A stretch of 64,000 bases of DNA. Source: Paraphysomonas bandaiensis (taxonomy: Eukaryota; Protista; Chrysophyceae). Location of the stretch: positions 271,569-335,568 of the forward strand of contig CBFFRP010000182.1 of assembly GCA_965644295.1 (NCBI GenBank). The letters run 5' to 3'. The notes under the pieces were generated by a model. That model made no database searches and was not told the DNA's origin. It was given only the letters and a program-made list of their open reading frames with translations. Shown here one piece after another: positions 1 through 64,000 of this stretch (positions within the stretch are counted from its first letter, which is position 1; each line of letters starts with the position of its first letter). A program made the translations under genes and the position numbers.

Positions 1-350
1 TAATACCATTCTTTGATGGCAAGATTTCAGCTACATCGAAGCGATCATCATTGGCCTTTACTCTTGATTCGGTGGATGGACGACAACATGCATTAACAAG
101 GTCCGTCACTCTTTTCATAATTTTTTGCAAAGTTATCTGGTTGTTATCATGTTTACGAATTTCGTTTTGTGCTAAGTATTTCTTCGTGATACTCTCAGGA
201 ATAAAATGTTTCTTACATGTATGCGTTAGAATTATTCGATTATCCTTCTTATCATGTCTGCAGAGACCAGCTTCGCTCCATTTCTGTGTTTTGATCTCAG
301 TGTGGAGATTGTTAAAATGAGTGCACACGAGATCGATGTCCTCATCATCT
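1..350 (-). CDS. Partial minus-strand exon of an unknown gene running off the window start
   Basis: Stop-free minus frame DDEDIDLVCTHFNNLHTEIKTQKWSEAGLCRH...DDRFDVAEILPSKNGI up to position 1, divergent from THADA. Start and upstream exons unresolved. Confidence 0.35.
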
Positions 351-376
351 ATATGATATATTTCGTCCATTTAGTT

Positions 377-434
377 ATGTGTATGTAGATATGTGTGTAT
401 GTAGATATGTGTGTATGTAGATTTGAGTGTATGT
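377..434. repeat. Short tandem repeat, ~16-nt unit (atgtgtgtatgtagat) x ~3.5
   Basis: Directly visible. Confidence 0.8.
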
Positions 435-793
435 GATAGTTGTTTGTTTGGAGCATCCATTTTTAGGATGGATCCGATCCTCTGTCCACTTTTTGGATAC
501 AAGTGAGATAGGCAGAGAGCCATGTGTAGAAATTGTATGAGGAATATTTTAATACTGTTGGAAATACTGTGGTACTACGTATCACAACTGCTGCTCGTGA
601 TATATCGTTCTCATCCAATGGTTCCTGGTATATGTCTTATCTTCATATATATGTACAGGAGATGTCTATATAGTGGACTTTAGTAACTAACTTCACTTCA
701 TCTTTGGGTAGAAGTGAATAGAATATTCATTTTCTATTGGCTACAAACCCGTAAAGTGTATCTTCCTTCTGTAAAAGTACTGAAACAAAGAAG

Positions 794-3700
794 ATGGTTA
801 GAAAATCAAAACGTAAACATGTTGTACAAGCATTTGAAAAGAGTGAGCATCCAGCTCCTGTAGATTTCAGTAAGTTCTCAACTATTGTTGAGGAAGGATC
901 TGGAAGTAGTAATGGAGTTGTTGTATTGGGAATCATTAAGTTGATTGCCTCATCACCATCTTTATCTCAACAGATACGTATTATTCAAGATAGTAAGAAA
1001 GTATTAAAGGTATTCATATCTACCCCCTCTAACCCTTATATCTAACGATCACATGGTGTTTCTAATAGGAGGTAACCACTAGAGAGTACTGTGAAGATGA
1101 TCGGGAAGAAAATATTGAGGTGAGTTGAGTGTTCGTATATATTAGGGGATAATAACGGTTCTATAAGGGCATCACACTACTCTTGCATGTGTTTCTAGAA
1201 CCAAGCCATATGTGGCTCCGAAAGTACTTAGAGTGGATATCTGAGGCTATATGCAAATCACGATGCCTTCCACATCGAGAGTTACGAAACTGTATTCGCA
1301 ATACATGTATGTCCGTACTTCACCAATGCGTCGAGTCCAGGGATTTTGAAAGCGGGTCCCTTGATCGATGCTTTGAATGGGTTTACACTTTTCAGTGGAT
1401 GGTAAACCTCGACAAAGAGATTGCCTGGATGGACGATATTACTTGTGAAGAAGGCACAGGGTACTGGGAGTCTGCTACCTGGCCGGCCGGCCGTGAACTC
1501 GGCGAAGGGGGCTTGCTCTTGTTCTTGCAAGCGATGACCCCTCTTGTAGTGCGTTGCTCCAAGACGGTGTGTGAATCTGGTGGTTCGGATACATTCGGGC
1601 AGCAGAGGAGCGCTGCAGAGGTACTGAGGTACGCCGAATGTGTTGGAGAGAGTCTAAGAGTGTTGTCCGCGGCCCTGAAGCCTCGACGTGGGGCTATAAT
1701 TCCCTCCCTGCCTCATCTCCCCAAAGAAAATGAAGATCCGTGGAAACAAGTGACAGATGTGATGCTCACGCATACTTGTCAGATGATTACCTCAGAAGCA
1801 CTGAGCAAAGTAAGTCGAGTTATATAGATAATTTTCTTGTCATTACTGCATCGAATTTGTGATGATTGTGAGTTTGTTTTCAGGATGCGCTTACATCAAC
1901 TGCATTAGCCATTGTTAACATTCAGTGGTTACTGCGTGAGCGCTTATGGGAATGTGCGCGTCGACGCTACCGCTACCTTTCTGTTGGTGGTGAGAGCCAC
2001 TTAACTGTGGTTAACATTGACAAAACTTCAAGTTTTAGCGACATCGAGTGGCAAGATGCCTCCTCCTGCGCTGGTTTGCAATTGGTAGCACTTTTGGGGT
2101 TATTACAACAGCCACCTGCCGTCGATAGTCCGCGTGCAACTTTAAATGTGCTACTCAACCAATCGGCCTCACTTATACTGCCCTTCGCACTCGCAGTGGG
2201 AATATCTCCAGTCGTTGTTTCTGCTCTCGGACCACAGACCTCAACTCTACCTCAACTCTCTCGCTGCGCACTTTTTCGCGCATGCCTGTCAGTATTCGAT
2301 GCATCAGCTCTTATGTACTGCCCTATGCGCAATAACTTTTCTAGCACCACTACCAGTCGGTCCATGAGAGACCTGCTGTCATTCCTGCAGCTATTAGGTG
2401 AGGCACAAAAGGAGTATGGAGAGGAGAAATCCCGCAGTGTTCACGAGGGGCTAAATGTTGAAGACCTCGAACAGATTGCTGCCCAATGTGTCACTGAGAT
2501 TTCCTCCGCCAAGGATTGGATAGCAGTGGCCGGAGCTACCTCGACCCCTTTTTCCCTTGATGGTAACGAATACCATTCATCTGGCCTTCTATTTGGAGCA
2601 ATGTTTGACATGACGGCCTCTCTCTGTTTCGATAGTGTTACTCCCGCTGTGCGAGTATACGGACTACAGACCTTAGAAACTTGGCTCGGTCGGGTAGATG
2701 TAGACCATTACTCAAAAGTTGCTGCTGGTGGAGGGGTCACGAGTATGAGCGGTGTAGCTGAGAAGCTTCTCAGAGGGAATCTTGTTTCACGCCTTTGTAT
2801 AGTTGATTTCCTACTCACGAAAGCTTGGAGTCACCCATCGAAACTGGTAGGTGTGACATTCTGTCAATACTTCGTAACTCGTTTTCTTCAGGTAAATCAC
2901 ATGGTTCCAATGGCCTACCAAAGAGTGTTAGATATTGCACACAAACTGGACACAGAAATCAAATCCAGAGATGCAGTGGGAATTCCTGACCATGACGATA
3001 TATGGGGCCCATTTGTACGGAACGCACTCAGTCAGCCTGTTCAGTATAGGTATATAAGCTGTATGACACCTTGTTTCCTTCATGACAAGGTAAATTGTTT
3101 ACAGGGGTCGGTACCAAGCTCTTTCATATTTGCTCCCGAAGGTGGGCGGCGAGCATCTGCTACAGCTACACCCCCAGGTATAATCATTGCATAGTGTATA
3201 TTTAAACTTACACTTCTCTCTTTCAGATCTTTCGATCCCTTGTCATGTCGATGAGGGTCCGGGATGTGGCATCTGCAGTCGGCTCATTTATGGGTAGTCT
3301 TCTGAGATCTCTTCTGAAGGATAAATTACGCAAAATTAGCGACATCAGAAAGATGTATATACACCATGTTGCGTGTGGCCTTTGCTCACCGGAAGTAAAG
3401 CTAAGGTTTGTAGTCTGCGCTATGAGTGCTTCATGTGAATGTTAATTTCAGAACCAATTGCGCGGATCATATTATTCCAGAGATCCTTTCTATTGACCTG
3501 GACAGCGGACCGATATTAATCAACGAAATAAGAGAATTGACGGCTGTTGATGATCAACCCGTGTCATCTATGAGCAAGCTGTGGGGTATTATATCCATTA
3601 CATTGCATGCACGTCTCTTGTCCAAAAATGGCGCTGATATTGTTGAAACCAATGAAATAAAGAATACATCTCATGTGATGGAGAATAAGAAAGGGAACCG

Positions 3701-6700
3701 CAGTACCTCATGGCTTCCACTCACTGCAAGGGAACTGGAAAGCGCATGCTTATGGTAAATTATACTCGTTTGATATAATATACCTAACGTCTACATACAG
3801 CAATGACGTAGAAATCAGACTTACTGGTCTTACCGTCCTCACCGCTTGTCAGGTATTTTCGAGTTTATGTTGAGTGTGTGAATATAACGTGCCTTAAATA
3901 GAGGACATTAGCTCCCATTCCACCGCTGGAACTGAGGATTCTTCGTAAGACGCTTCCTTACAGTCTGAAGAGTCCTGTTGCAGACGTTCGTCAGAAAATC
4001 GTTAGAGTTTTGCGAACTCTGGTGACCAGGTAGAGGAGCTTCAAATTTCGTTAGTTTTTCTTTGAAATTCTCTATATGCAGACTGCGGGAATCGTATCGC
4101 ACAAGTGTTAGAGATGGTAAGAAGTTATTGTCCCGAAGGCAGTATGATGCACGAGAAGCAGCAGGAGAGTCAACATCCGCTGCGTCCAGTTTTGATAATA
4201 TGACTGGAACCGATTTGGTAATATTTATTCTTGCGGATACAAGTGCAAAAGAAGAGGAGACTGCATGTAGGATGATTATTACTGACTCAATTTTCGCTCT
4301 GATGCTGTAGTAGGCGCAGAAGTTATTAAGAATGTCCTAAACACTCTTGAATGGCTTAGTCGAGTAATACTAGCTAATATTTACCCCGGTGCACCCAATG
4401 ATAGAGAGGTGAAAAGTTTGTGGTGAACTAGTTCTTTAATGAGTGCTTATTTTGTACAGATAATGGCCCTAGAGATGCTCAGGTGTGTGTTTACCAGCAT
4501 CACTGGTGAGTTGGGGACTGGTATCGCGAAGAAGACTAAAAACTCTCATGCTGCTGTTCCTCTTGACCCTGAACTCAATGCTGCTCTTCTGTCCATTTTT
4601 TGCACCGAGCAAATGACTTACAGTATTTTGAATCTCCTTATATCGAGGTAAGTTTGGGCTTCTGAACGTGACTAGCGCATCATTACATCACCTGTAGTTG
4701 GGATCGCACAAGATCACTGGCTGCGGAGTTGTTGAATGCTCTACCCAAGCCATTGCCAGGTTATGAGACTCCAGAAAAGGTTACTTCTCTGTGGAGGTTG
4801 GGGTGCAAACTTGTTGGAAGTGCAAGGCAACGGGAGTCTGATTCAGGTAAGTAGGTCATGTATACTGCTTTTTTTTTTCTACGTCATATTACAAAACGCA
4901 GGTGCCTTAATTTTGAGGGTTGTTATGTCAATTTTCTCCCTCCAACTGAATTGGGAAATCCAGCGTGATTCCACCACAGAGTACGATGAAAAGCTGGAGA
5001 TGGATATCTCCGAGAGATATGGAATGGTGTGGCCGGCTAAATCTATAACTACACCCGTGTCAGAAAAAAATCCGTACAGTGGACGCAAGGAGTCTCTAGT
5101 GTTCATAGAGTCCCTCTGCGATATTCTTGATAGCCGCCTCTTTCACGTATCTAAATCTTTTGAGCTGCTTTGTGGCAACAAAGATGCGATATTGAGTGGT
5201 GCGTTTGTGATGCCTTCATCTTTAGCCCATGGTACAGTTTTAGCCATCCGGTACTGTATTGAAGATGCACATGCCAGCGGAATATTGCCGTCTGCTACTT
5301 CTAACGATGCTTGTCAAGGCAAGAGAAAAGGGAAATCTTCACGTGACACAATCCCACTTGTCGCTGATGATATGGCAGAACGATGGAAAGACGTCGTTAA
5401 AAGGACTCTACAGCTGTCGTTAGCATCACTAAAGGCCGCCATGCAAATAGTAGCAGATGCACCGGTTGACACTATGTTTGCTCCGATGCCATTTGATTGC
5501 AAGAGTTCTTCCAAGAAAGATACTAGAGGATATGCATCCGACTCGTTTATGCTAAATACTAATGTTTTCATGGATCTCGATGTCGGCGCAGAAGGCGAGG
5601 GCGGGCCTGATGATGACAGTTTCGGCAAGAAAATGCAGCATGCAGTTATTGGTGCATGGCTTCTTGTGAAAGAATCGTGTGCACTTATAGCGAAATTGGT
5701 TGAAATATCACCCGCTCCTTGTGAATCCGCGGGAAATGAGCACTCTGTGCTGCTCACTACAAATGAGATATCCAATGTTGGATCGGTTTTGCTAGATGCT
5801 CTAGCCCGATTGAAACATAATGGGGCAATAGCTGAAACTCAAACAGCCTTACAATCTGTCTGTCAGAGCGTTCTCAGGTAGTAAATAGATATTTTGGTCG
5901 AAGCAAGAATGATTTTTTGTTGTAGCTGCAGTAGCAGTCGCGCATTATCGCAACTGCCATCTATTTGGCTAGACTCCCTATTTGAGAGACTTCGTGGAGA
6001 ACATCAGGTATTTTGCATACTTTACTGGAGTGAAGTATCACAATTTTGTCCAGGTGTTCATTCTTCGGCGATCAGCAGGATTTGCTTTTAGCTTTATATC
6101 CCTTCTCCGTTCCGAGCCAAAGAACTGTAAGCCGACTTTGCTCCCTTTAGCGATGCAGTTTTTGTTTGAGCATGCTTCCAAGGGCCTTGGGCAAGAAGAT
6201 GGCAACGACGCTCTCGAGGGAAATGGTTGGAGATCCGTTGTACATTCTCTTAATATTTTGCGGTGGGTTTACTAGTACTAAATGTGTGTTGCTTTCTAAC
6301 CGCTCTTTGTAAAATAGTCTTATAATATTGGACTCAACTCTCGGCCCTGACTTATTTCCGTACATACCTCAGACAACTAAGATTGCAGTGAAAGGGTTTA
6401 AATCCCCAATGTGGGCAATTCGAAACTCATCTATGATGGTAAGCAGTACTACATTGCTCTAGTTTTTATTCTGCTCTTAGATGTGATCTTTTGCAGGTGT
6501 TTTCGGCTGTTGTGCAAAGGACAGTTGATAACGACAAAAAGGAGTCCGGAGGAATGAGAGCAGCAACTCCAGCAGATTTCTTTCAGAGATACCCGTCTCT
6601 TTTTCCATTTGTGCTTAGTGGTGAGTATTTTTTCGTTTTCACTACTGGTGGTACTGCTGTGTTAACTCGGTCGTTTTCATTTGCAGAATTGTCAGATATT

Positions 6701-9700
6701 GTTCGTGCGAATCTGGAGATGGATAGCAGAGGCTGGCCTGTCAACATTTCTGTTGTTGTATCTACACGCCAGCCCCCAGAACAAACCCATCCTTCTCTTT
6801 ATCCCCTACTCTTGATGCTGTCGAAGATGAGGTATATTTTGTCTAGCGTAACTTCACGGGTTTACGCACTATTGTCCATAGAACATCTACATTAGAGTCG
6901 TCTCCACCCGACGCATCGAATGCGCGGAAGGACTCTGGTGGTGGAAGTGATATTTTGGAAAGTACTTTCACTGATGTGCAGTGTGATATTTCCTTATTCA
7001 TTCCGCTGATACAAATGTGCTCGAGCCAGCAATTATACCATGTATGCATTATAATTCAATGCTATAAGAGATATCTAATTTTCGCTACCATAGGTGCGGA
7101 CGATGGCAGCGAAAGCACTTTCATCTCTTGTGCCTTTACAGCAGGTATTTTCTGGATGCTCTTAATTATCATGTAACGAAATTCAGGTTCCACTACAAGT
7201 GGCTTCTATTATGGAGAGATTGTCGAAGTCATTTGTTGCTGTTAAGAAAAATGCAATCAGCAGGCGACGAGGGATTCACGGAGGAAATTGTGATGGCTTT
7301 TCGTCGAATATTTTGCACGGTATGCTTTTACAAGCCTATAATCTCACGTGGAATCTCCAAAGACTCATAGTTGGCGATTCAGCTGATATGGGGGATAATG
7401 AGGTATTGTTAGGGTTCTATACGTTATGATTCTAAACTCTAAACGCAGCTATATTTTTCTCGTATTGTCGATGACATATCGAAACTCGTCGTCCCACAGT
7501 TACTCCATCTACAGCAAGCAATGGTATCGTTTGCTGGATCCATGGAGAATGAGGGACTTGTTTTGAATGGTGTATCGTTAACGTTTCCTTATCCCCCTTC
7601 CGTCATACTTACATTTGAGCGACTTGTGAGGGTTGTGCACAAAATGGTACCGAACGAAATTACCACTGAACTTCTTGTGAAGGTCTGTGAGATGGGTATT
7701 GCGGAATTACTTGACGGGATGAATGTCAAAGTGGGTGCCGGGCACGACGTATTCTGTGTACCAATGTTACCTCTTCTGTGGAAAGAATGCCTTGAAGACC
7801 TCGTTGATGCTACGTTCTCTTATGTATTAAACGGGAAGAATGGCATGGATTCGCATGCTGGTGTAGATAGCGACGAATCCCCTACCAAGCCATTGGCTGG
7901 GCTAGACATGATCCCGTTATGCCATCTTCTCTCTCTAGTAGATCACCCAATTAGTGAAGTACGAGAAGGGATACTACGTGGGTGCTTACGCGCTTTTAAC
8001 ACACTTACTTCTGGTATCAATACTTCACCAAGTGCACACACTATATGTGCTAAGGTTAGAGACTACATATATGCGTCACGAACTGGTACAGAAACGGAAG
8101 CAACGGCGGGGAATATTATCGATGTGCTATTACGACGGTGTATGCAAGAAGCAGAGCCCCCGATTCTTGAAGTTACACTTGAATTGTTATCAAGGTACGT
8201 CACGTATTGTTTCATATGACTTGTTTTCATATTGTATCGTTCCTTGTTTGCAGTATAACTCTGTGGGTTCCTTTTTCGGCTCTAGAAGACTTGCAAACGA
8301 AAGAGAATTGCCTTGATAGCGTATCTGTTCTGCTGCAGATAGCATGTGGAACATACTCTCCTGACACCATGTTGGACTTCTTGGACCCAACGGTGCACAG
8401 CTCTGCAACACTGGTCAGCTGTGTAGCAACGAACGTGGAAAGAGAGGGTGATATTCGTGTTGCACCTACCACATCGGCATCGTTTGCCCTACAGGTATTG
8501 GGGTGGATGGTTCGCAGTTTTTTTACGATGTCATTGTCTCTTGTCCAAGAGAAAAATTCCAATATGGCCGAAATTTTATCCACCAATGTGCCGCTGGGCA
8601 GATTACGTAATGAACAAGAATCTGTGCTTTCTAATAATCGCGACGAAAGATTGCCGTCTTGCGGAAGCGATACTGAGGCAATTGGTAGTGCAGCCGATGA
8701 TGTGGTTTGTAGCAGTAACCATGTGTGGTCTTGGTTGAGACTGATGGAGTTGGCGGGAGCTGGGGAAGGAGCAGAACTAGATGCACGCGGTGCTGCTGCA
8801 CGCTGTTTGTCGACATCTGGTGCACTTCAATGGGCTGCATTTAATTCTGTTCTGGGCACTCAGCGTATAAACGATATTGACGACTCCTGCTTTGGTAGCA
8901 GCGATTTTTCATGTCGGGTGTGGATACTTGCGCTCCACTTGATGCAGGTATATGTCATAGAGCTCATATCGTGTGGGTGATCATATGTTCGTAGGACGAC
9001 GATTCAGACATACGCTGCTGGGTGAATTCTGCTGTCAGCGAAGCTATTGACCTTGTTTTCAAACTTCAGCCTTCACTGCGATACGTGAAAAACATTCAAC
9101 TGGGAACCTTACCGTGTAGCAGTCAGACTATATCAGAACTTATAGCTTTCAGTGAAATGAATAACGAGTCACAGGCAGATAATTACAGAGTAGTTGATAT
9201 ATATGAAGATGCGTACTCGTGCGGCGCCGTAGAAATCGAATTTGATAGTGTTCAGGGGCTTGCTCTTGAGCGCCTCACGATTCCTCTATCTCTAGCAATC
9301 ACGTGGTCGCTCCTGTTAACCCAAGTTAAGAGCGATGACGACGTGCTGCGTTCGGATAGAAGTGTCGATGAGTTGCTCACTATAAGAAGTGGTGGTATAT
9401 TGCCTGTGTGCCTGAGTGGAGTGGTTGCAGCATGGACCGAGACTTGTGGTGTATTCTCCACAGCCACATTGGTTTGTGAATCCGAACAGCGTATTGTACA
9501 GAGTTTAGACGTTCCGGAAAAGGTATTGATGCACTTTGTTTTTGTAATATTCTGACCTTCTTATGTAGATATTTGAGGCGGATCAGTCGAATCTTTTCGA
9601 GGAGCGCGTTGTACAATCGAATGCGTTGTCCTTAGCAATGTCTCTTTCGGTGAGTCTACTCCCAATTCACCGAACTTCTACAGTCTGGGCGACGATATTC

Positions 9701-10192
9701 CGAACTGCCTTATGTGCTATGAAGGTCATTGAATGTACCACTTCTGATGATGAGAACAGCACGGTAGCCTCACCAGGAGGTTGGATTGGAGGTTTTACGT
9801 ACTACTCGGATCAGTTTCTAGACTTTCATTGCGCTCTCTCTGGTGCAGCATCGCTATGCAAGATCAGCAGGCAACGTGATTCACTGGATAATCTCAAACA
9901 CCCTTCTTTTCGGACAAGAGAAAATGATATGTCAGAAAGAAGTGCTGTTAATGATTTTCATGCTGCAGTCTCATCTCTTCAAGATTACGCGCGACGTATT
10001 TTAACGCGTATATCCTTGAAATCTAACGCCCTTAATGTCAAAGAATCCAGTGAGTGTGGTGATACTACCCCATCGAACTGCAGTCAAAGTATGACTATAC
10101 ACCCCTTGATTATAAAAAATCTTGTTGATATTATTGGTCCCACGGATACTAAAAAGCATGAAGCTCAGAGCAGTAGTTGTTTAGTTGTTTAG
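794..10192 (+). CDS. THADA: THADA / Trm732-like HEAT/ARM-repeat protein (DUF2428), multi-exon
   Basis: Chain of + ORFs separated by short GT-AG introns. Family motifs: 'AWLLVKESCALI', 'LARLKHNGAI', 'ILRRSAGFAFSFISLLRSEP', 'VHSLNILR', 'WAIRNSS', 'DFFQRYPSLFPF', 'HPSLYPLLLMLSKM'. ATG at 794, stop at 10192. Confidence 0.85.
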
Positions 10193-12463
10193 GTCAAGGT
10201 TTCGACAACGTAATTAAATATGTCATTAAGTTTTATACTATACTGGATACTGGCTGGGTAGTCCGCTTCGTGCGGTTCAGTGTCGACATGTAGTAGCGAA
10301 ATTTAAGGAATCTTGTCGTGGTCTGGATGAGATGGCAAAGCGCTTGCCAAGTCAAGTTTATAGTATAAAATGGATGTTCATAGTACACTGCTTATCACTG
10401 CATTGCGTGAACTTTTGTCACTTCTTACCTCAAATTTGAGGAATGCGTCGTATATAGTAGGAATGCTGAGTGGGTATAAAATTATCTGCTGACTATACAT
10501 GCGGCTCACGTTAGAAACTGAGGGAGATGTTTGGAGTTGAGCTAGAATGAGAATAATTTCATGTATGTAATTAATTCTTAGTATTACAGACTATACCTCC
10601 TGTTGAACTTATATATATGCCCTTATTACACTATACTAAGAGATAGCATACGATATCGTACACTGCATAAATTATACATTGGTACTAATACTACTGTAAG
10701 TAGTAGTGGTGTTATTGCATGCAGTAGTGGTGAATATAGCTGTATGAGTGTGCAATATATACGAACTCGGGCTATTCGATTGGGGCGTTTGCAATCTCAG
10801 GAGAGGTAAATGCTGCTGTATAAGTGTACGATATTACAAAAAAAGTGGCAGGGGCAGCTTGTAACGCCTTAAATGGTTGCAACTTTTTCTTTATCTTTAA
10901 TCACAATATTAAGCTTTCTTTATTTACAAATTACAGCCTAATAATAAATCAACACTCAACTTTACCAGTTTTTGGTACTACCTCGACTTAATAGTACGTA
11001 GCTATCATACCGCTGTATCTGGCTTTCCACACTACAACGCATTACACAGCTGTATACTGTCTAGTCCACCTTTCAGTCCCATGACAGTCAGTATCCTATG
11101 CGCAAATGAAACGACATAATTGGTGTAAGATTGGCCTTAAATTCTCGTTTTGTTTAGAATGTTCGGATTTTAGGACAATAATGGAAGAGGTAAGAAAAAC
11201 GTGAGATCCAAATGTAAAAGTATGGCTAAACAAGACTCTAAAAAGAGAAAGAAGATGAATATAACAGTAAAACAAAGATTTTCTGATGGGTATAATATAT
11301 CAGATATTAGCACCTGTACATTAATATTCATTCCGGGTACGCTTGTGGTTAGTGCAGAAATGATTTCAGAAAAGCTCTTAGTACTGTAGACATCAAAGTA
11401 TTTAATTATTCAACTCTAATCCCAGTACTACATTCCAGGCTTGCGTAACAATTAGTTGCCAATTAAATGAATTGGTTTTAAAATGATAATGCAATTATTA
11501 TAATTGATCAATATTGCGTATTAATTGGCTGGCTAAAGAGCATCAAATGGAGTTCACTGTATGATATAGCCAAAACCATGATGTCCACTTATCTTTCTCT
11601 CTCTGCGTGTTTTGGATTAAGCTCAAGCAAAGTGGATTGTGCCAGGATAGGGGTGCCTTCTCTTATTTAGAAAGGTTTAGTATCGTCTGTAAAGTTTCGA
11701 AATCAGATGAATAAGAACAGATTGGTCTGGATGATGATTTAATTCGTCAGTACCTGAAATGAAATTCTACTTGAATAAAGACACAAGCATTGTTTTTAAC
11801 GCAGATTCAAGGTTCAAGAAGAACTGAACAGCGCTAAAAGCACAAATACGATGCTTTTAGATGTCCCTCCAGACGAATGTGAATTCTATGAAGAGAAAGA
11901 GGATAAGGTAGACAACGCCATTCGTTGACTTAGAGACAACCGAAATAACCATACACTAAATTACCAACACGATGTCGCTATATGTTATATGAAGCATATG
12001 AATATGGTTTCGTAAGAGGTTGCTTAGCAGTACTAAGATTGTTATGACTTATTCTTGCAAGCGAATGTTACTTATCCCCTGGACACCTTGAAATATCGAT
12101 GTTTCTGCCTGCAAATCGCCATCTTTGGGATAAGATTGTAGTTGAAAGTTATTCAAAACAGCAATAAAATTGAAGGCAATTAGTTAGCAATAGTTGCAAT
12201 TGCTTTCGTTGGATACCTCTCACCAATTAATTTGCATAGATCATGCTTACGCTACCCGTACACTGCGCTAAAGTAAAATATGTAGTGCTATATATATAAA
12301 CTATTAGTTCTTGGCTACACAGTACTCACCTTCAAACGTTTGATAACACAGACACGAATAGTAGCTACTTATTATATAATGTTGACTACTGAAAACACGC
12401 GCCGTACTGCTGTAAGGAAAATCATATCAACACTCAATATTTCTACATGTATTGGCAACAAAG

Positions 12464-57451: not shown

Positions 57452-59146
57452 ATGAATGAAATCACTCTATCTGATCTTAATGATGATGTTCTCCGTCTCA
57501 TCATCTCTATGATCCCACACGGAGCTCTTCTTCCTGTGGTCATGACTAGTAAAAGATTTCACGATATAGTCTACACTGATAAGAGCAGAGAGAGACTTGA
57601 GTCACATGCATCTCACTACTGTATGACCAACTCAATGGTCTCATGGGCTCTGGCTATGGGCTGCCCACACACCAAACTAATGAATACATGTGCACGATAC
57701 GGCAGACTACATCTGCTGGAGCATATCATGAGCCACATATACACACATACACATACACGGCACCCCACACACATATGGGGTAAGGATTTGTCTTGCAATC
57801 CTGCACTGAGTGCTGCTTATGGTGGACACTTGGATGTTTTGAAGTGGCTGCGTTCTCAGGAGCCTCCATGTCCATGGAGTGAATTTATTTGTCATATTGC
57901 TGCTGGTGGTGGACACTTAGATGTTTTGAAATGGCTTCGTTCACAGGACCCTCCATGTCCATGGGATGAATGGACTTGCAGGTTTGCAGCTTATGATGGA
58001 CACTTGGGTGTTCTGAAGTGGCTTCGTTCACAGGACCCTCCATGTCCATGGGATATCAACACTTGCAGCGCTGCAGCAAGTGGTGGACACTTGGATATTC
58101 TGCAGTGGTTTTGTTCACAGGACCCTCCATGTCCATGGAATGAATGGACTTGCAGGGCTGCTGCACATGGTGGATATTTGGATGTTGTGATGTGGCTTCG
58201 ATTTCAGGACCCTCCATGTCCATGGGATGAATGGACTTGCTGTGCAGCTGCACAGGGTGGACACTTGAATATACTGCGGTGGCTCCGTTCTCAGGATCCT
58301 CCATGTCCATGGGATGAAGGCACTTGCAGGGCTGCTGCACAGGATGGACACTTGAATATACTGCGGTGGCTTCGTTCTCAGGATCCTCCATGTCCATGGA
58401 ATGAATGGACTTGCAACGCTGCAGCAGAGTATGGACATTTGGATGTTTTGAAATGGCTTCGTTCACAGGACCCTCCATGTCCATGGGATGAAAGGACTTG
58501 CAACGCTGCAGCAGAGTATGGACATTTGGATGTTTTGAAATGGCTTCGTTCACAGGACCCTCCATGTCCATGGGATGAAAGGACTTGCAGCGCTGCAGCA
58601 AGGGGTGGACACTTGGATGTTCTGAAGTGGCTTCGTTCTCAGGAGTCTCCATGTCCTTGGGAAAAAGACAGTTGCTGGACAGTTGCAGGGGGTCGACACT
58701 TGAATATACTACAGTGGCTTCTTTCACACGACCCTCCATGTCGGTGGAATAAAAATAATTGCAGCGATGCAGCACTGAATGGACGCTTGGATATTCTGCA
58801 GTGGCTTCGTTCACAGGACCCTCCATGTCCATGGGATGAATGGGCTTGCGGTGTCGCTGCAGCAGAGTATGGACATTTGGATGTTTTGAAATGGCTTAGT
58901 TCTCATGACCCTCCATGTCCATGGGATGAATGGACTTGCAGCGCTGCAGCAAGGGGTGGACACTTGGATGTTCTAAAGTGGCTTCGTTCACAGGACCCTC
59001 CATGTCCATGGAATGAAGAAACTTGCAGTGCAGCTGCAGAGGGTAGACACTTGGATATTCTGATATGGCTTCGTTCTCAGGACCCTCCATGTCCATGGGA
59101 TGAATGGACTTGCGGTTTCGCTGCCACAGATGATGTTCACAGCTAA
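57452..59146 (+). CDS. F-box-like + 15 x 29-aa 'PPCPWD' ankyrin-like repeat protein
   Basis: Intronless 564-aa ORF. N-terminal 'LSDLNDDVLRLIISMI...LLPVVMTSKRFHDIV' is F-box-like; repeat GHLDVLKWLRSQDPPCPWDEWTCxAAAx is encoded by 87-nt units. Confidence 0.85.
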   Translation: MNEITLSDLNDDVLRLIISMIPHGALLPVVMTSKRFHDIVYTDKSRERLESHASHYCMTNSMVSWALAMGCPHTKLMNTCARYGRLHLLEHIMSHIYTHTHTRHPTHIWGKDLSCNPALSAAYGGHLDVLKWLRSQEPPCPWSEFICHIAAGGGHLDVLKWLRSQDPPCPWDEWTCRFAAYDGHLGVLKWLRSQDPPCPWDINTCSAAASGGHLDILQWFCSQDPPCPWNEWTCRAAAHGGYLDVVMWLRFQDPPCPWDEWTCCAAAQGGHLNILRWLRSQDPPCPWDEGTCRAAAQDGHLNILRWLRSQDPPCPWNEWTCNAAAEYGHLDVLKWLRSQDPPCPWDERTCNAAAEYGHLDVLKWLRSQDPPCPWDERTCSAAARGGHLDVLKWLRSQESPCPWEKDSCWTVAGGRHLNILQWLLSHDPPCRWNKNNCSDAALNGRLDILQWLRSQDPPCPWDEWACGVAAAEYGHLDVLKWLSSHDPPCPWDEWTCSAAARGGHLDVLKWLRSQDPPCPWNEETCSAAAEGRHLDILIWLRSQDPPCPWDEWTCGFAATDDVHS

Positions 59147-61021
59147 TGTCGCTTCCGTTGCAGGACATGTCATGTTTATATGCAGAAATATTACAATCTA
59201 AGAGTTTTCGCGTGTAGCGGATGAGCCATTGCCTTTAATTTGAATCCAATCACGTGTATGACATCTCATATCAAGAACATGTTGTAGTATATTATGCAAT
59301 CAACTATATTGATATCCGTGCAGGATGTAGTTGTATAGTAATAATAGCGAAACTATGTTCAATTTCGCAAAGTTTTCTGAGCATTAGACAACAAAGTATG
59401 CATTGCAAAACATTTATAGACTTATTAATATACATGATATTAATCAGGACACACACAGCGTCGATGAAATGCATATTCTATTAAATCAATTTGTTCAGGT
59501 GTAGTCAAATTAACCATCACCCAGCTGGTGGTCTATTCCAGCAGGTTCCATGCCGTTAATTTCATCTTGTAAAATTTTCAATTAACTGGAGTTCTTTAGT
59601 TTTATACACGAACTGTATATTGAACTACAACCAACTCCTAAGTTTGGTAAAGCCAATCGCTAGTAGTTATCCTGTATTCTATGTAGCAATGAAATACAGA
59701 ATATACCTGACTACAGTATAGGAGTAGCTATTACAAGTATACAAAGAAACTGAAAATATAGTATCTATTAAAGATATGATTAGTGGAACAGAATGTTGAT
59801 GTTGGTGAATGACGTGGTTCCTAACTCACAGTGCTACAACATCATAAACTTACTATATATCTCCTATAATATCAATCAGTCAATATTGCACTAACTAAAA
59901 GCTTAAATTAATATGGAAGCGGATGGGAATTTCACGAATGTCGCCTCAGGCTCAAAGGTACCTCCCTTTTCGAGGAACTGAACTTCAAGAAATTCAAGAA
60001 GTTCTTCACCTCATTCCTCATGAGACACAATCGAGTTCATCTTGTCCTCTCAAAGGATAAACCAAGGCACATTCATGATCTAGACTCTACAGTCCCAGCG
60101 GGTGCTCATTTGACTGATGCACAGAAGAAGAGACTACGCAAAGCGAAGAAACTCTGGAACACCCGGAACGAGACCGCGTACTCCTTCCCGATGGAAGTGT
60201 GCAATGCTCACCCAAAAGCAGGCACAACAGCGGCTCTCTACGAAGAAAGTACAGCAAAAGGGTTACTACAGACACTCTGGCAGACAGAGAGATTTCTCAA
60301 TGTTGAAAAGAATACAGTACAGGCAGAGGTCACAAAGTTCTATTCAATGAAGATTACCTCAAGTCAGTCAGGAGCAGAGTTTGTCGACAGCGTTGAAGCC
60401 CAGGCCAAAATTCTCGAGAATCTAGGTCGTGAAGTCACGGAAGACGACAAGCTCACTCGACTAAAGGAAGGTCTCACAAACAAGAGATATTCCCAACTAG
60501 CACACAGCCTGTATACAGCAAACGATGTGACATACGCAAGAGCAAGCAGCCTAATCAAAGGGTATGAAAACACATCATTCGGCAAGCATGCGTTGCAAAA
60601 TTCAGGGGAAGACAGTGTCAATCAAGCAGTGGATGACAGTAAATGGAAAGAGCACAAGAGAAAGGGCAGATGCAATAAGTGCAAGAAATTTGGCCACTTT
60701 TTGCTAGGGAGTGCAAGACTCCAGAACATGTCATAAAGAGGATGAAGGGGACAAGATCACAGAGAAAAGATGGAGATCACAGAAACAGGGGTGATAACAA
60801 AACTAAGCTACCTGTGTGTGAGATATGTGACATCCCAGGCCATCAGACTAGAGACTGCTTCCACTTGAAGACTGCTAAAGCTGCAGTGGTCAGTTCTAAA
60901 CGGGGGCGAGACTCTAGAAGGGAAACGGCACCCTACAAGAATAAGAAAAACCGCGAGTGTCTGTACATGATTCAGAAGATGAAGCGGGATATGAATCGAT
61001 GATATGTATGTGTGGAAGAAG

Positions 61022-61559
61022 AAGCAACCTTAAGACAAACGTGGGAAAAATGTTCAAATTTGGGACTTTTGATTGAAAGCTATATGTTCTACGAGTAATT
61101 TTAATGTTAATTTGTCCCGAAATGTTATTCGAGTATGTAGTTTGCAAGAAGTTTTCATAATTATCGTATGATATTTTAATAAAATATATGATATATTCAT
61201 TATTTATAAGTAGTTACCGTGGGGCTAGTACGTTTTTCCATAACTTTTGGGGCTGAACCTACTGCACTCTAGTATCTTTTCATTCATAAGGTACAATTTC
61301 TACTTCATAACTAGCACAAGTTTTATTGACTCTTTCATGACGTTAGCAGCTTCCCTTCCATTCCTTCAGCTACTTCACCGACTATGAACTCTATATCATA
61401 TTTTCCATTCTTGTATTCTAATACGGCACCATTAATATTGTGAATTTTCTGATCTTTTCACCTATATTTCATAGAAGTGTTCGTGCCCACTACTATTCTC
61501 AGCACTACTATCGCCACAAGTTTCAAAAAAAATTTCCCACGTTTGTCTTAAGGTTGCTT
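61022..61559. mobile_element. 538-bp MITE (27-bp TIR, 3-bp TSD aag; PIF/Harbinger-like) inserted in Copia-2
   Basis: aagcaaccttaagacaaacgtgggaaa / tttcccacgtttgtcttaaggttgctt; excision restores EEEENLAHSMSDVIYLDSG. Confidence 0.8.
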
Positions 61560-63480
61560 AAGAGGAGAATTTAGCACACAGCATGTCAGATGTCATTTAT
61601 TTAGACAGCGGGTGCAACAAGATGATCCTCACCTCCACAAGCCACATGACCAACCTTCAGCACGCTGATAGGCAAATGTTCACAGCGAACAAAGGTAAAC
61701 TGTCAATACACATGTTCTCTTTACACCTGCTGCAGTATTTATTGCAAAAAGCATCAAAAACTCAACATAAATCGACATTTTCAAAATTTCACCAGGTTTA
61801 GAGCGCTTCTCCAGGTTTGTTCATCACATCGACGTGATGTAGGAAGCTTTAAAAAGGTGTACTACGCACCTGAAGCAAGTAAGAACCTCGTAGATATGAA
61901 GAGCATCACAGATAGGGGCTGTGTTGTGACGTTCGATAATGATGAAGTCGTCATTCGAAGTAAGACTACGAAGAACAAGACACTCATTAGACCGTGAAGT
62001 GTTAATGGATTATATCCAGTTCGACTCGAAGACTTACTTCAGCTTGGAGAAGAATCCTCAGCAGCACTTGAGGAGCAGGGATTTGATGATCAGCGAATTT
62101 TATGGCACAAAAGACTTGGCCATCATGTATTTTGTCAACTATGATAAACTGACTGAGTCCGACCGCCGAGGCCTAGTTGATGGAATAAATCTGGACAAGA
62201 AGTACTTCAGGAAAAAGCATAAAAAAACGATATGCAAATGTAATACCTGCATGCGATCGAAACTCACAAGAAAGAAATTCAGGACTCCACGCCAGTTGAT
62301 GAACTTAGACAACAACCCAAATGAGATGGGGTGCTCAGTGCAGATACGATGGAAGTCCTAAACACGCCATCGATGGAAGACTACAAACATGTGTTACTAT
62401 TCAAGCACAGTAATGCAAAACATGTATGGGCTTATGGCTTAAAAAACAAGACTGGGAGAGTGAAGTGTTAAAGTGTATGAAGGACATGGTAGAGACCCAA
62501 CTTGTCAAAGAAGGATTGCAACTACGACAATACCATCATGCAGATGGCGCAGGAGAATTTTAGTAGGGCAACATGTCAGGCAGTACTTACGTGAAACCAC
62601 CAGCACAAGGACTGTACAAGTTACTTGTGGACTCCACGTGACACACCCGAAATGAACTCGCTATCGGAACGCACTAATCGTACAGTGAAGGAGATGGCCC
62701 TTGCTATCTTGCTCAATAGTGGCATACCATAAGTATTTTGGTTCAAAGCAGTCTTGCATGCTGTATATCTGATCAACAGGTTACCTACGAAGACGACAAA
62801 AGGATTCATCTCACCTGTTGAGTATATTACTAGAACCGCACCAGATGTGAGTGGCTTGAAGATCTGGGGCTGCAAGGCATGGGCTATCGTGCCGAAGGAG
62901 CTGCGCCGCAAAGAGTGGAAAGAAAAGGGAAAGCCTGGATATATTATATGGGACAATGTCAACAACCTGTTGAACACCAAATATATATACTCCAGACCTG
63001 GATGCTATTATTGTTACAGTAATCGCCAAATTTGATGAGTCTATTCCAGAGCGTTCACAGGAGTATTTCGACGAAATAAATAATTTACAAATCGACACCT
63101 CAGAAACAGCAGAAAGTGTAAATGATTATCAGTACCTGGTGGGCCTCAGACATCTTGATGGACATCTGTATTATGTTACCACCAGAGTGATAGAGAGAAG
63201 AGGAGTCATTGTTGCATATAGGAAACTAGATACGGAAGGAAATACTACCGAGGAGCAAACTCCAATTCATATCAAAGATGTAGTAAAGATGACTCACTCT
63301 ACAAAGTGTCAGACCGACAAGTTTAATAGTTTGCGTGTGACCACGTGGCATCTCGCGTGCCTTACTTACGTGGCTATAGTGTTCTCCTAAGGGGCTACAA
63401 GACACTAGATAGACTAACTACCAAGAAAACACTCAGAGATAACAACAATTATTAGTTACCACAAAAGGAGAAATGACTAC

Positions 63481-63998
63481 TCACTTAAGGCGTAGCTTAC
63501 TCTTGCGGTGATACCACTCACCATAGTCAGCAATCAGCTCCTCACCTTCGGATATAGGTCTCAGAGTCTTCACCCAGACCACATCCAACCCAGACTCATC
63601 AACGCTAAACTCACAGTTGTAATCCATACCGGCAGCGAGGTCAGCATCATACAGAGTGTTTACGTACCGGCCATGATTAGGTGGGGCATGAAGCAAATTG
63701 CGAGCAGGCACTGGAGGTAGAAGTCCAATACGGCGGAACAAACCTCGGGTGCACATTCTGCGGAAGAACTGTAGAGATAAGGAACTACTTTGCAGAGCTT
63801 ACCAGACTTGTCTAAGACACCTTGAGGACATCGTGCAGCAATATCATGTGCACGGCGCTCTGCAGCATATTCTCGGATAGCCTTTCTCCGAGACTCCTCA
63901 TACCTTTGCAGGGAGGCTTTACCACGTCTTTTCTTGGATCTCTTCGCCTTAGACATACACTCTGAGCTTAAGGACGTGCAGGTGGCATGTTGCTGCAA
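63481..63998 (-). pseudogene. SET-domain (lysine methyltransferase-like) gene remnant, antisense to Copia-2
   Basis: 'NHGRYVN...YNCEF...VVWVKTLRPISEGEELIADYGEWY' is the C-terminal SET signature. A basic N-terminal ORF (MSKAKRSKKRRGK..., 63660-63998) lies in another frame; the N-terminal half of SET appears deleted. Confidence 0.7.
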
Positions 63999-64000
63999 GA

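Follow-up and report, generated by a model that had tools for sequence, protein, structure and literature searches.

Mobile elements can read chromatin, for instance by means of chromodomains, and DNA methyltransferases have been taken over by a few of them; some retrotransposons are reported to have taken up DNA cytosine methyltransferases (DNMTs) in this way. Long terminal repeats (LTRs) can themselves serve as coding space, as in mouse mammary tumor virus (MMTV), whose sag gene is an open reading frame (ORF) on the sense strand of the U3 region and encodes a superantigen, not an enzyme. Antisense genes are known from HTLV-1 (human T-cell leukemia virus type 1), with HBZ, from other retroviruses and from plant LTR retrotransposons, where they lie internally, between pol or env and the 3' LTR. 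Compact SET proteins through which genetic parasites act on host chromatin are exemplified by vSET of Chlorella viruses. Here we analyze the end of a 64,000-bp stretch of the Paraphysomonas bandaiensis genome (the window; C182:271569-335568 in an assembly of 62.6 Mb and 669 contigs, which was searched throughout). The window ends in an LTR of a Ty3/Gypsy retrotransposon nested in a Copia element, and the Gypsy lineage carries a SET-domain gene antisense within its LTRs. We put the probability at about 85% that this reading holds as a whole, including its functional part, namely that the encoded protein would be a nuclear lysine methyltransferase aiding the element.

The locus resembles each of the described systems in part. 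As in the DNMT retrotransposons, a cellular-type enzyme that writes the epigenome multiplies with a retroelement; there, however, the DNMT lies in the internal coding region, whereas here a predicted SET lysine methyltransferase is encoded by a separate antisense gene of the LTR. With MMTV sag it shares an LTR-encoded accessory protein that is duplicated along with the LTR, but the SET gene is antisense and its transcript is polyadenylated at a separate site within the LTR. HBZ-type genes are likewise accessory ORFs opposite gag-pol that are transcribed antisense from an LTR; in contrast to them, the whole SET transcription unit is contained in the LTR. Legionella LegAS4 (PDB 5czy, 8swi) is also a compact SET protein of a genetic parasite aimed at host chromatin, although it is only ~20% identical and carries ankyrin repeats, whereas the LTR protein has a basic helix and a pre-SET module of its own. 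A full-text search, limited to one literature collection, returned no description of a SET gene inside an LTR. Grau-Bove et al. (10.1101/2021.11.30.470311) report fusions of transposable-element and chromatin genes, including SETMAR, with SET methyltransferases among the listed domains; their survey scored single gene models containing both domains, in which a stand-alone antisense SET gene of an LTR would not register, and the text consulted describes no LTR-embedded SET gene. Capture of chromatin genes by transposable elements and genes inside LTRs are both established.

A Ty3/Gypsy LTR nested in a Copia element

An earlier note on this stretch had proposed that the SET gene is antisense cargo of a Copia element, placed between its integrase and its reverse transcriptase (RT). 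A search of positions 63000-64000 against the assembly revealed a switch of repeat family at 63335/63336: positions 63002-63335 are Copia, with more than 30 copies at 95% identity, and positions 63336-64000 match about eight other loci at 97-100% identity. The SET remnant starts 146 bp past the last Copia base, with no boundary that is obvious by eye. The Copia internal region of the window aligns at 93-96% identity to an intact copy on C75 (L015) up to position 6130 of the latter, within a single ORF of 1507 aa that runs uninterrupted across the insertion site and contains no SET gene there. The note had also suggested looking genome-wide for SET genes between Copia integrase and RT; the Copia copies match only as far as 63335.

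The nested element could be followed on a second contig, C273, which carries in order the terminal 570 bp of the internal part of a Gypsy element, a polypurine tract, an LTR, TGCG and then Copia through its 3' LTR. With slashes marking the junctions, the window reads ...GTTTGCG/TGTGACC, C273 reads ...GTCATA/TGCG/AAATGAG and the intact Copia reads ...GTTTGCG/AAATGAG; Copia thus restarts on C273 4 bp before the point at which it breaks off in the window. The LTR on C273 is a 3' LTR, preceded by the end of a Gypsy pol gene and AAAGAGGGGAGGGGGCAA, and is 100% identical to the part of the LTR seen in the window. From the junctions on C273 and C75 it follows that the sequence at the end of the window is the 5' LTR of a nested Gypsy element, inserted into Copia with the target-site duplication (TSD) TGCG. 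Considered on its own flank, the window LTR must be a 5' or a solo LTR, since Copia and not a polypurine tract lies to its left. Contig C182 terminates at window base 64000, and because the two LTRs are identical we attribute the end of the contig to an assembly break. The insertion sits in the linker between Copia integrase and RT, in the same orientation as Copia. The RT and 3' LTR that the note had proposed to look for past 64000 are indeed present, on C273, but only after the nested Gypsy element. Its core idea, a retrotransposon-borne SET methyltransferase gene, stands, while the assignment to Copia does not, since the gene sits in a nested Gypsy LTR. The note had itself named a separate element with termini and TSD of its own as the outcome that would overturn the proposal; the SET gene belongs to just such an element, marked by the termini TGTGAC...GTCATA and the TSD TGCG, and the Copia proposal falls accordingly.

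The SET gene and the LTR that carries it

The nature of the carrier is evident from a complete element on C599, which has direct LTRs of 1424 and 1432 bp (98.4% identity) and the TSD ATGG. It encodes an intact gag-like ORF of 598 aa and an intact pol of 1321 aa (Pfam: RVT_1 378-505, RT_RNaseH 573-704, Integrase_H2C2 782-831, rve 857-944), and the order of RT, RNase H and integrase is of the Ty3/Gypsy type. The polypurine tract AAAGAGGGGAGGGGGCAA abuts the 3' LTR. Read in the gag-pol sense, the LTR runs from TGTGAC to GTCATA and ends in TA instead of CA. LTRs also occur singly. A 1188-bp unit on C366 interrupts one of two inverted paralogous histidine-kinase genes with the TSD TCTG, the second paralogue representing the empty site, and other single copies have the 4-bp TSDs CAAT, GATG, GCGT and ACAC, giving five solo LTRs with TSDs in all. 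Some copies adjoin a common purine-rich tract on one side and others a common sequence on the opposite side, and are therefore 3' and 5' LTRs, respectively. Identification of the 1.2-kb unit as a miniature inverted-repeat transposable element, a Helitron or another DNA transposon was ruled out by the copies flanking gag-pol, and both the purine-rich tract and the gag-pol genes, which lie opposite to SET, show that the SET strand is not the sense strand of the element.

The SET gene (~245 aa) occupies the 5' two-thirds, presumed U3, of each LTR in antisense orientation. In C599 it lies at LTR positions 149-886 in both repeats, opposite to gag-pol; the 3' LTR holds an intact ORF of 245 aa, that of the 5' LTR carries an indel of 8 bp, and the ORF is richer in GC (51%) than the remaining LTR (39-40%). 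Since the gene is copied with the LTR, there are two per element and it persists in solo LTRs. The 245-aa protein has 66 tblastn matches in the assembly, many of them paired 5.5-7.6 kb apart. Against the Pfam SET profile (cut-off 22.4), the intact homologue (L041:8244-8981(-)) reaches 30.9 bits and covers profile positions 2-105.

Compared with this protein, the window holds a remnant. Here the earlier note was accurate in its observations: the C-terminal half of a SET domain is encoded antisense, by a 91-aa ORF at 63481-63756(-) that reads GRYVN...NCEF...TLRPISEGEELIADYG (in a fuller reading of the frame, ...GRYVNTLYD...NCEF...TLRPISEGEELIADYGEWY), and a K/R-rich N-terminal ORF (MSKAKRSKKRRGK...) lies in a different frame at 63660-63998(-). 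On its own the 91-aa ORF reaches only 21.6 bits (E=3.1e-4), below the Pfam cut-off, and matches profile positions 70-105. By tblastn, the intact homologue aligns through its residues 162-245 with window positions 63484-63729(-) (72% identity, E=3e-33) and through its residues 12-86 with 63708-63932(-) (57%, E=4e-21). Residues 87-161, about 75 codons comprising the N-terminal half of the SET domain with motifs I and II, are deleted, and this deletion accounts for the frame change between the two pieces. The note had judged the gene broken and without an evident intron, and we concur: of all GT-AG pairs spaced 18-250 nt that were tried, only 'introns' of 20-23 nt join the frames. The window copy, an LTR of type A, is incapable of making a working enzyme.

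A Gypsy element on C70 with a pol 88% identical to that of C599 carries a 244-aa SET ORF (55% identical) that is intact in both LTRs. This locus (L044, C70:6500-15500) consists of two tandem Gypsy-SET elements with one LTR in common, in which the first 2098 bp (1-2098) return at 6144-8241, an offset of 6143 bp, with 99.86% identity; gag is shorter than in C599, with an ORF of 216 aa. On C338 (L045, C338:267500-276500), a pair of LTR-like sequences that are 92% identical bears a SET gene 71% identical to that of C599. The C338 pair encloses ~4.4 kb without pol, where the only ORF, of 228 aa, belongs to no recognized family; the element appears to be a non-autonomous relative. On C656 and C491, pol is 73% and SET 39% identical, with SET just beyond the 3' end of pol on the opposite strand, as judged from match coordinates. 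Intact frames of 233-287 aa are thus kept across families at 39-71% amino acid identity. Between LTR type B, in which SET is intact, and C338, the ratio of nonsynonymous to synonymous substitution rates (dN/dS, Nei-Gojobori) is ~0.13, a rough figure given that dS is ~2; in deeper comparisons synonymous sites are saturated and the proportion of nonsynonymous differences (pN) is 0.36-0.45. The SET ORF is a genuine gene family under purifying selection and not a chance ORF. The earlier note had raised an intact SET ORF under selection as a check on its proposal, and the 244-245-aa ORFs of C70 and C599 together with the dN/dS value provide it.

The LTRs of near-identical elements come in three types, A, B and C, which share their first 511 bp and last 42 bp (in SET orientation) and differ in between. 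The middle of type C is 614 bp long and unrelated to the SET-bearing middle (L034 2012-2625, L035, L036 and L037, on C58, C95, C362 and C400); it showed no SET similarity (tblastn E=0.059) and, among the loci examined, no match outside its own family. Because pol genes that are 99-100% identical are attached to all three types, the LTR middle behaves as a swappable module.

Table 1. Features at the 3' end of the window (window coordinates).
Feature	Position	Strand	Evidence or remark
Copia host 5' LTR	59618..59914	+	93-96% to both LTRs of the intact C75 copy (L015 3096-3402, 7968-8275)
Copia internal region, gag to integrase, degenerate	59915..63335	+	Interrupted at 63335 by the nested insertion
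TGCG, left copy of the 4-bp TSD of the nested Gypsy element	63332..63335	+	Junction reads (see text)
Nested Ty3/Gypsy 5' LTR (type A), first 665 of 1188 bp	63336..64000	+	100% to C273:874-1538
Conserved LTR terminus TGTGACCACGTGGCAT..., U3 start, presumed integrase recognition end	63336..63380	+	(Near-)identical in LTR types A, B and C, the C70 family and L068
TAATAAT, resembling a poly(A) signal, past the stop codon of SET	63448..63454	-	Equivalent in the B, C70 and C338 families and in other-sample contigs
SET domain C-terminal half, remnant (RYVNT, NCEF, EELIADYG)	63484..63729	-	tblastn; Pfam 21.6 bits
Basic N-terminal and pre-SET region, different frame	63708..63956	-	tblastn, ORF list; likely start codon 63956

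The Copia copy in the window contains many stop codons, and Pfam places a retroviral SH3-like domain at 62754-63035. Two extra segments, 61023-61559 (537 bp) and 61717-61835 (119 bp), are missing from the intact C75 copy. Directly upstream of the Copia LTR, positions 57452-59146 (+) hold an intact ORF of 564 aa with ~11 ankyrin repeats of the ...GGHLDVLKWLRSQDPPCPW... type and a weak resemblance to the F-box (E=0.006; 16.9 bits, cut-off 20.5).

Fold, transcript and competing explanations

The LTR-borne protein has a SET fold, as judged from its predicted structure. An AlphaFold2 model built on a 43-sequence alignment reached a mean confidence score (pLDDT) of 92.4 and a predicted template modeling score (pTM) of 0.86, an earlier model from seven sequences having been poor (pLDDT 60). 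In this model, the SET domain is joined by a long basic helix at residues 16-44 and by a small pre-SET module. The top 50 Foldseek matches in the PDB are all SET lysine methyltransferases, including MLL1, SET7/9, NSD1/2, LegAS4 and SETD8, with E down to 7e-7 and a template modeling (TM) score by target of up to 0.69. At the sequence level, phmmer with the single SET protein found no matches among PDB sequences, and only family profiles reached PDB SET proteins: SETD8 was best, over the whole domain (E=3e-9), followed by MLL3, EHMT2, LegAS4 and EZH2. With an earlier profile, LegAS4 had ranked first among PDB sequences (E=4e-6). The closest cellular proteins are thus the H4K20 monomethyltransferase SETD8/KMT5A by profile and, by structure, the SET domain of MLL1 (TM 0.6-0.69 by target, root-mean-square deviation 3.2-4.6 A), with SET7/9 and NSD also similar; at 17-24% identity, with N-[TS] in place of N-H and no post-SET zinc motif seen, these likenesses do not imply orthology.

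Conservation within the family follows the catalytic motifs. The GxG and YxG of motifs I and II are nearly invariant (G113 in 47, Y129 in 51 and G131 in 49 of 52 members), as are Y143 and N187, the motif III Asn being present in 51/51; in ELxxDY, E227 is found in 51/51 and Y232 in 50/50. Where SETD8 and EHMT2 read NH in the alignment of motif III, LegAS4 reads NF.

The SET gene is transcribed into a separate polyadenylated mRNA of ~0.9 kb, which is not spliced and has both ends within the LTR. A word search uncovered a 237-aa homologue from an MMETSP transcriptome, on a transcript of 915 nt (L046), of which bases 1-909 match the gene at 99% in one of the C338 LTRs, the source of the RNA, without splicing, and the 3' A residues are non-templated. 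The transcript ends ~80 nt inside the LTR edge, and the poly(A) tail begins ~15-20 nt after an AATAAT-type motif, which is kept downstream of the SET stop in every family. Two marine metatranscriptome runs with poly(A) selection contain contigs of 765 and 777 nt that cover the C599-type SET ORF, and the adjacent pol is uncovered; the contigs indicate presence only, as their ends coincide with junctions between repeat variants and define neither transcript ends nor strand. At the C366 locus (L012, C366:40000-49999), the inverted paralogous kinases are hybrid histidine kinases (2134-4500(-) and 6676-9995(+)) and the solo SET-LTR lies at 7688-8875. Contigs from poly(A) metatranscriptomes extend from the end of this LTR into the kinase flank (loose ends at 9527), so either the interrupted kinase or LTR-driven read-through is transcribed.

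How the protein might serve the element can be outlined as follows. Imported into the nucleus by virtue of its basic N-terminus, the intact protein would act as a lysine methyltransferase and mark histones or another protein to the benefit of the element. By analogy with viral and bacterial SET effectors, the benefit may lie in countering silencing or in conditioning integration sites. Action in trans would allow the SET-less types A and C to keep spreading. Expression would depend on an antisense promoter upstream of the SET start codon, in a segment of ~546 bp in type B; some 511-522 bp of it is common to types A, B and C and would also have to hold the sense promoter and R/U5.

Other explanations of these data have to be weighed. 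The placement of the remnant so soon after the last Copia base made a Copia lineage with antisense SET cargo between integrase and RT a natural first impression, yet the end of homology at 63335, the absence of SET from the >30 other Copia copies, the continuity of the C75 element through the site and the termini, TSD and Gypsy-type gag-pol of the SET unit leave this idea practically no chance. It could be argued instead that the ORF is a host gene fragment, captured passively and carried in the LTR as a functionless passenger. LTR middles are swapped among near-identical elements through the shared 511 bp and 42 bp, and SET-less types are still spreading, as such a passenger would allow; but intact frames persist despite 29-61% protein divergence and saturated synonymous sites, the catalytic motifs are near-invariant in 52 members, the same architecture recurs in contigs from other samples in which pol is only 37-64% identical, and a dedicated polyadenylated mRNA is made, all of which renders this explanation improbable. 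We rate slightly lower still the view that the antisense unit acts mainly as RNA, regulating sense LTR transcription or feeding small-RNA pathways, with an incidental ORF. From the anatomy, the SET mRNA would be complementary to the U3 of genomic RNA in the 3' LTR, so that double-stranded RNA could form, but the constraint is seen at the protein level, in the low dN/dS, the conserved motifs and a confident fold obtained from covariation among 43 sequences.

Harder to dismiss, although we consider it unlikely, is a pseudoenzyme with a SET fold, which would attach to a histone tail, S-adenosylmethionine or a host factor and serve as a tether or decoy rather than as a writer. The family-wide replacement of the His in the NHS motif by T or S would suit such a role, and the N-terminal helix and pre-SET module, which the model folds confidently onto the domain, could form a binding surface. 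Retention of the ELxxDY Tyr, the motif III Asn, GxG and YxG is, on the other hand, what selection for catalysis predicts, and LegAS4, named in the PDB as a histone methyltransferase effector and solved with an H3 peptide, also does without this His. We give roughly even odds that the LTR protein is an active but atypical methyltransferase in the strict sense of catalysis.

Several observations also count against the reading that we prefer, a Gypsy LTR whose antisense SET gene encodes a nuclear methyltransferase of use to the element. The SET copy in the window is broken, and the element that holds it is of the SET-deleted type A with identical LTRs, hence a recent insertion of that type. Elements with 99%-identical pol carry types A or C, so an intact SET gene is not needed in cis, and three pol subfamilies (89, 78 and 70% identity) gave no SET match on their contigs, so that the presence of the gene is patchy. 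No primer-binding site was recognized; the C599 sequence after the 5' LTR (GTAATTAATTAC...) matched no tRNA. The join between C182 and C273 is deduced from the TSD and the continuity of Copia and not read from one contiguous sequence. The strand of the SET RNA is deduced from its poly(A) tail and not from a stranded library, and contigs from RNA libraries can contain DNA. As for catalysis, the residue after the motif III Asn is T in 31, S in 19 and C in 1 of 51 members, never H, and this His is essential in SUV39H1 and SET7/9.

Relatives in other samples and their meaning

The arrangement is not confined to this genome. An identical SET protein lies beside the same pol in Tara Oceans metagenome assemblies, and a profile of seven members matched 548 sequence clusters, defined at 50% identity, with E<=1e-3; 105 of these reach E<=1e-10 and 41 reach E<=1e-30. 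Most are 230-330 aa long with full-length coverage. Where contigs from other samples with SET at 27-41% identity provide context, the SET gene is followed within ~150 nt by a ...GGTCACA LTR end, a polypurine tract on the opposite strand and a convergent Gypsy pol. In L070 (SET 29% identical) an end reading ...GCGGTCACA and the tract precede a pol C-terminus of 42% identity; L072 and L073 (SET 27%) have the same end and tract, with 37-45% in the pol C-terminus. The corresponding values are about 40% and 64% for L074, and L081 and L082 (SET 31%) have pol at 54-66%, or 60% over the full length in L082, and gag at 28%. L068 (SET 58%) retains the conserved LTR terminus ATGCCACGTGGTCACA. Because these contigs share the layout, the SET-LTR arrangement must be old and not peculiar to this assembly.

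Members of the SET family also occur outside LTR elements. Two loci, L064 (C566:1-6500; ORF 3-5882) and L067 (C644; ORF 2114-9997), have ORFs of more than 1900 aa in which Pfam recognizes a SET/PR domain and, after it, an AP-endonuclease domain, an order suggestive of a polyprotein from a non-LTR retrotransposon. The L064 product has another SET-like region at residues 85-240, which is 28% identical to the SET domain of the LTRs and has the N-T motif in common with it; the same transposable-element-specific SET subfamily seems to be present in two retroelement classes. On the metagenome contig L076 (Ga0308003_1000687), a 237-aa family member (32% identity) stands in a same-strand row of ORFs at 3033-11732 beside ORFs for DUF6570, Helitron_like_N and a PIF1 helicase, and the row may represent a Helitron with a SET gene of this kind. 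Giant-virus contigs from metagenome-assembled genomes in IMG/VR (L085, L086, L095 and L096) encode SET cores 29% identical to residues 104-244, and a Nucleocytoviricota SET cluster is among the nearest neighbors in the ESM Atlas, which makes a link between the SET genes of transposable elements and those of giant viruses possible.

Taken together, these relatives allow a more far-reaching hypothesis, which we hold only tentatively and would not bet on. An old and widespread clade of Ty3/Gypsy elements in marine protists would encode an active histone lysine methyltransferase in U3, expressed divergently from the promoter region of the element, and would leave a working gene behind in solo LTRs; the mark would protect the copies from silencing or prepare integration sites, and the N-[TS] SET subfamily would move between Gypsy LTRs, non-LTR polyproteins and Helitrons.

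For genome annotation, our findings mean that, among the small 'SET domain proteins' of diatoms and plankton, in genomes as well as metatranscriptomes, many may be LTR genes and not host regulators. For the biology of the elements, each new insertion and each solo LTR seeds another copy of a putative chromatin-writer gene. The family thereby offers a testable case of a retrotransposon that may manipulate host chromatin with an enzyme of its own, and a single genome supplies the natural controls, in the form of LTR types with intact, deleted and replaced SET genes on near-identical elements.

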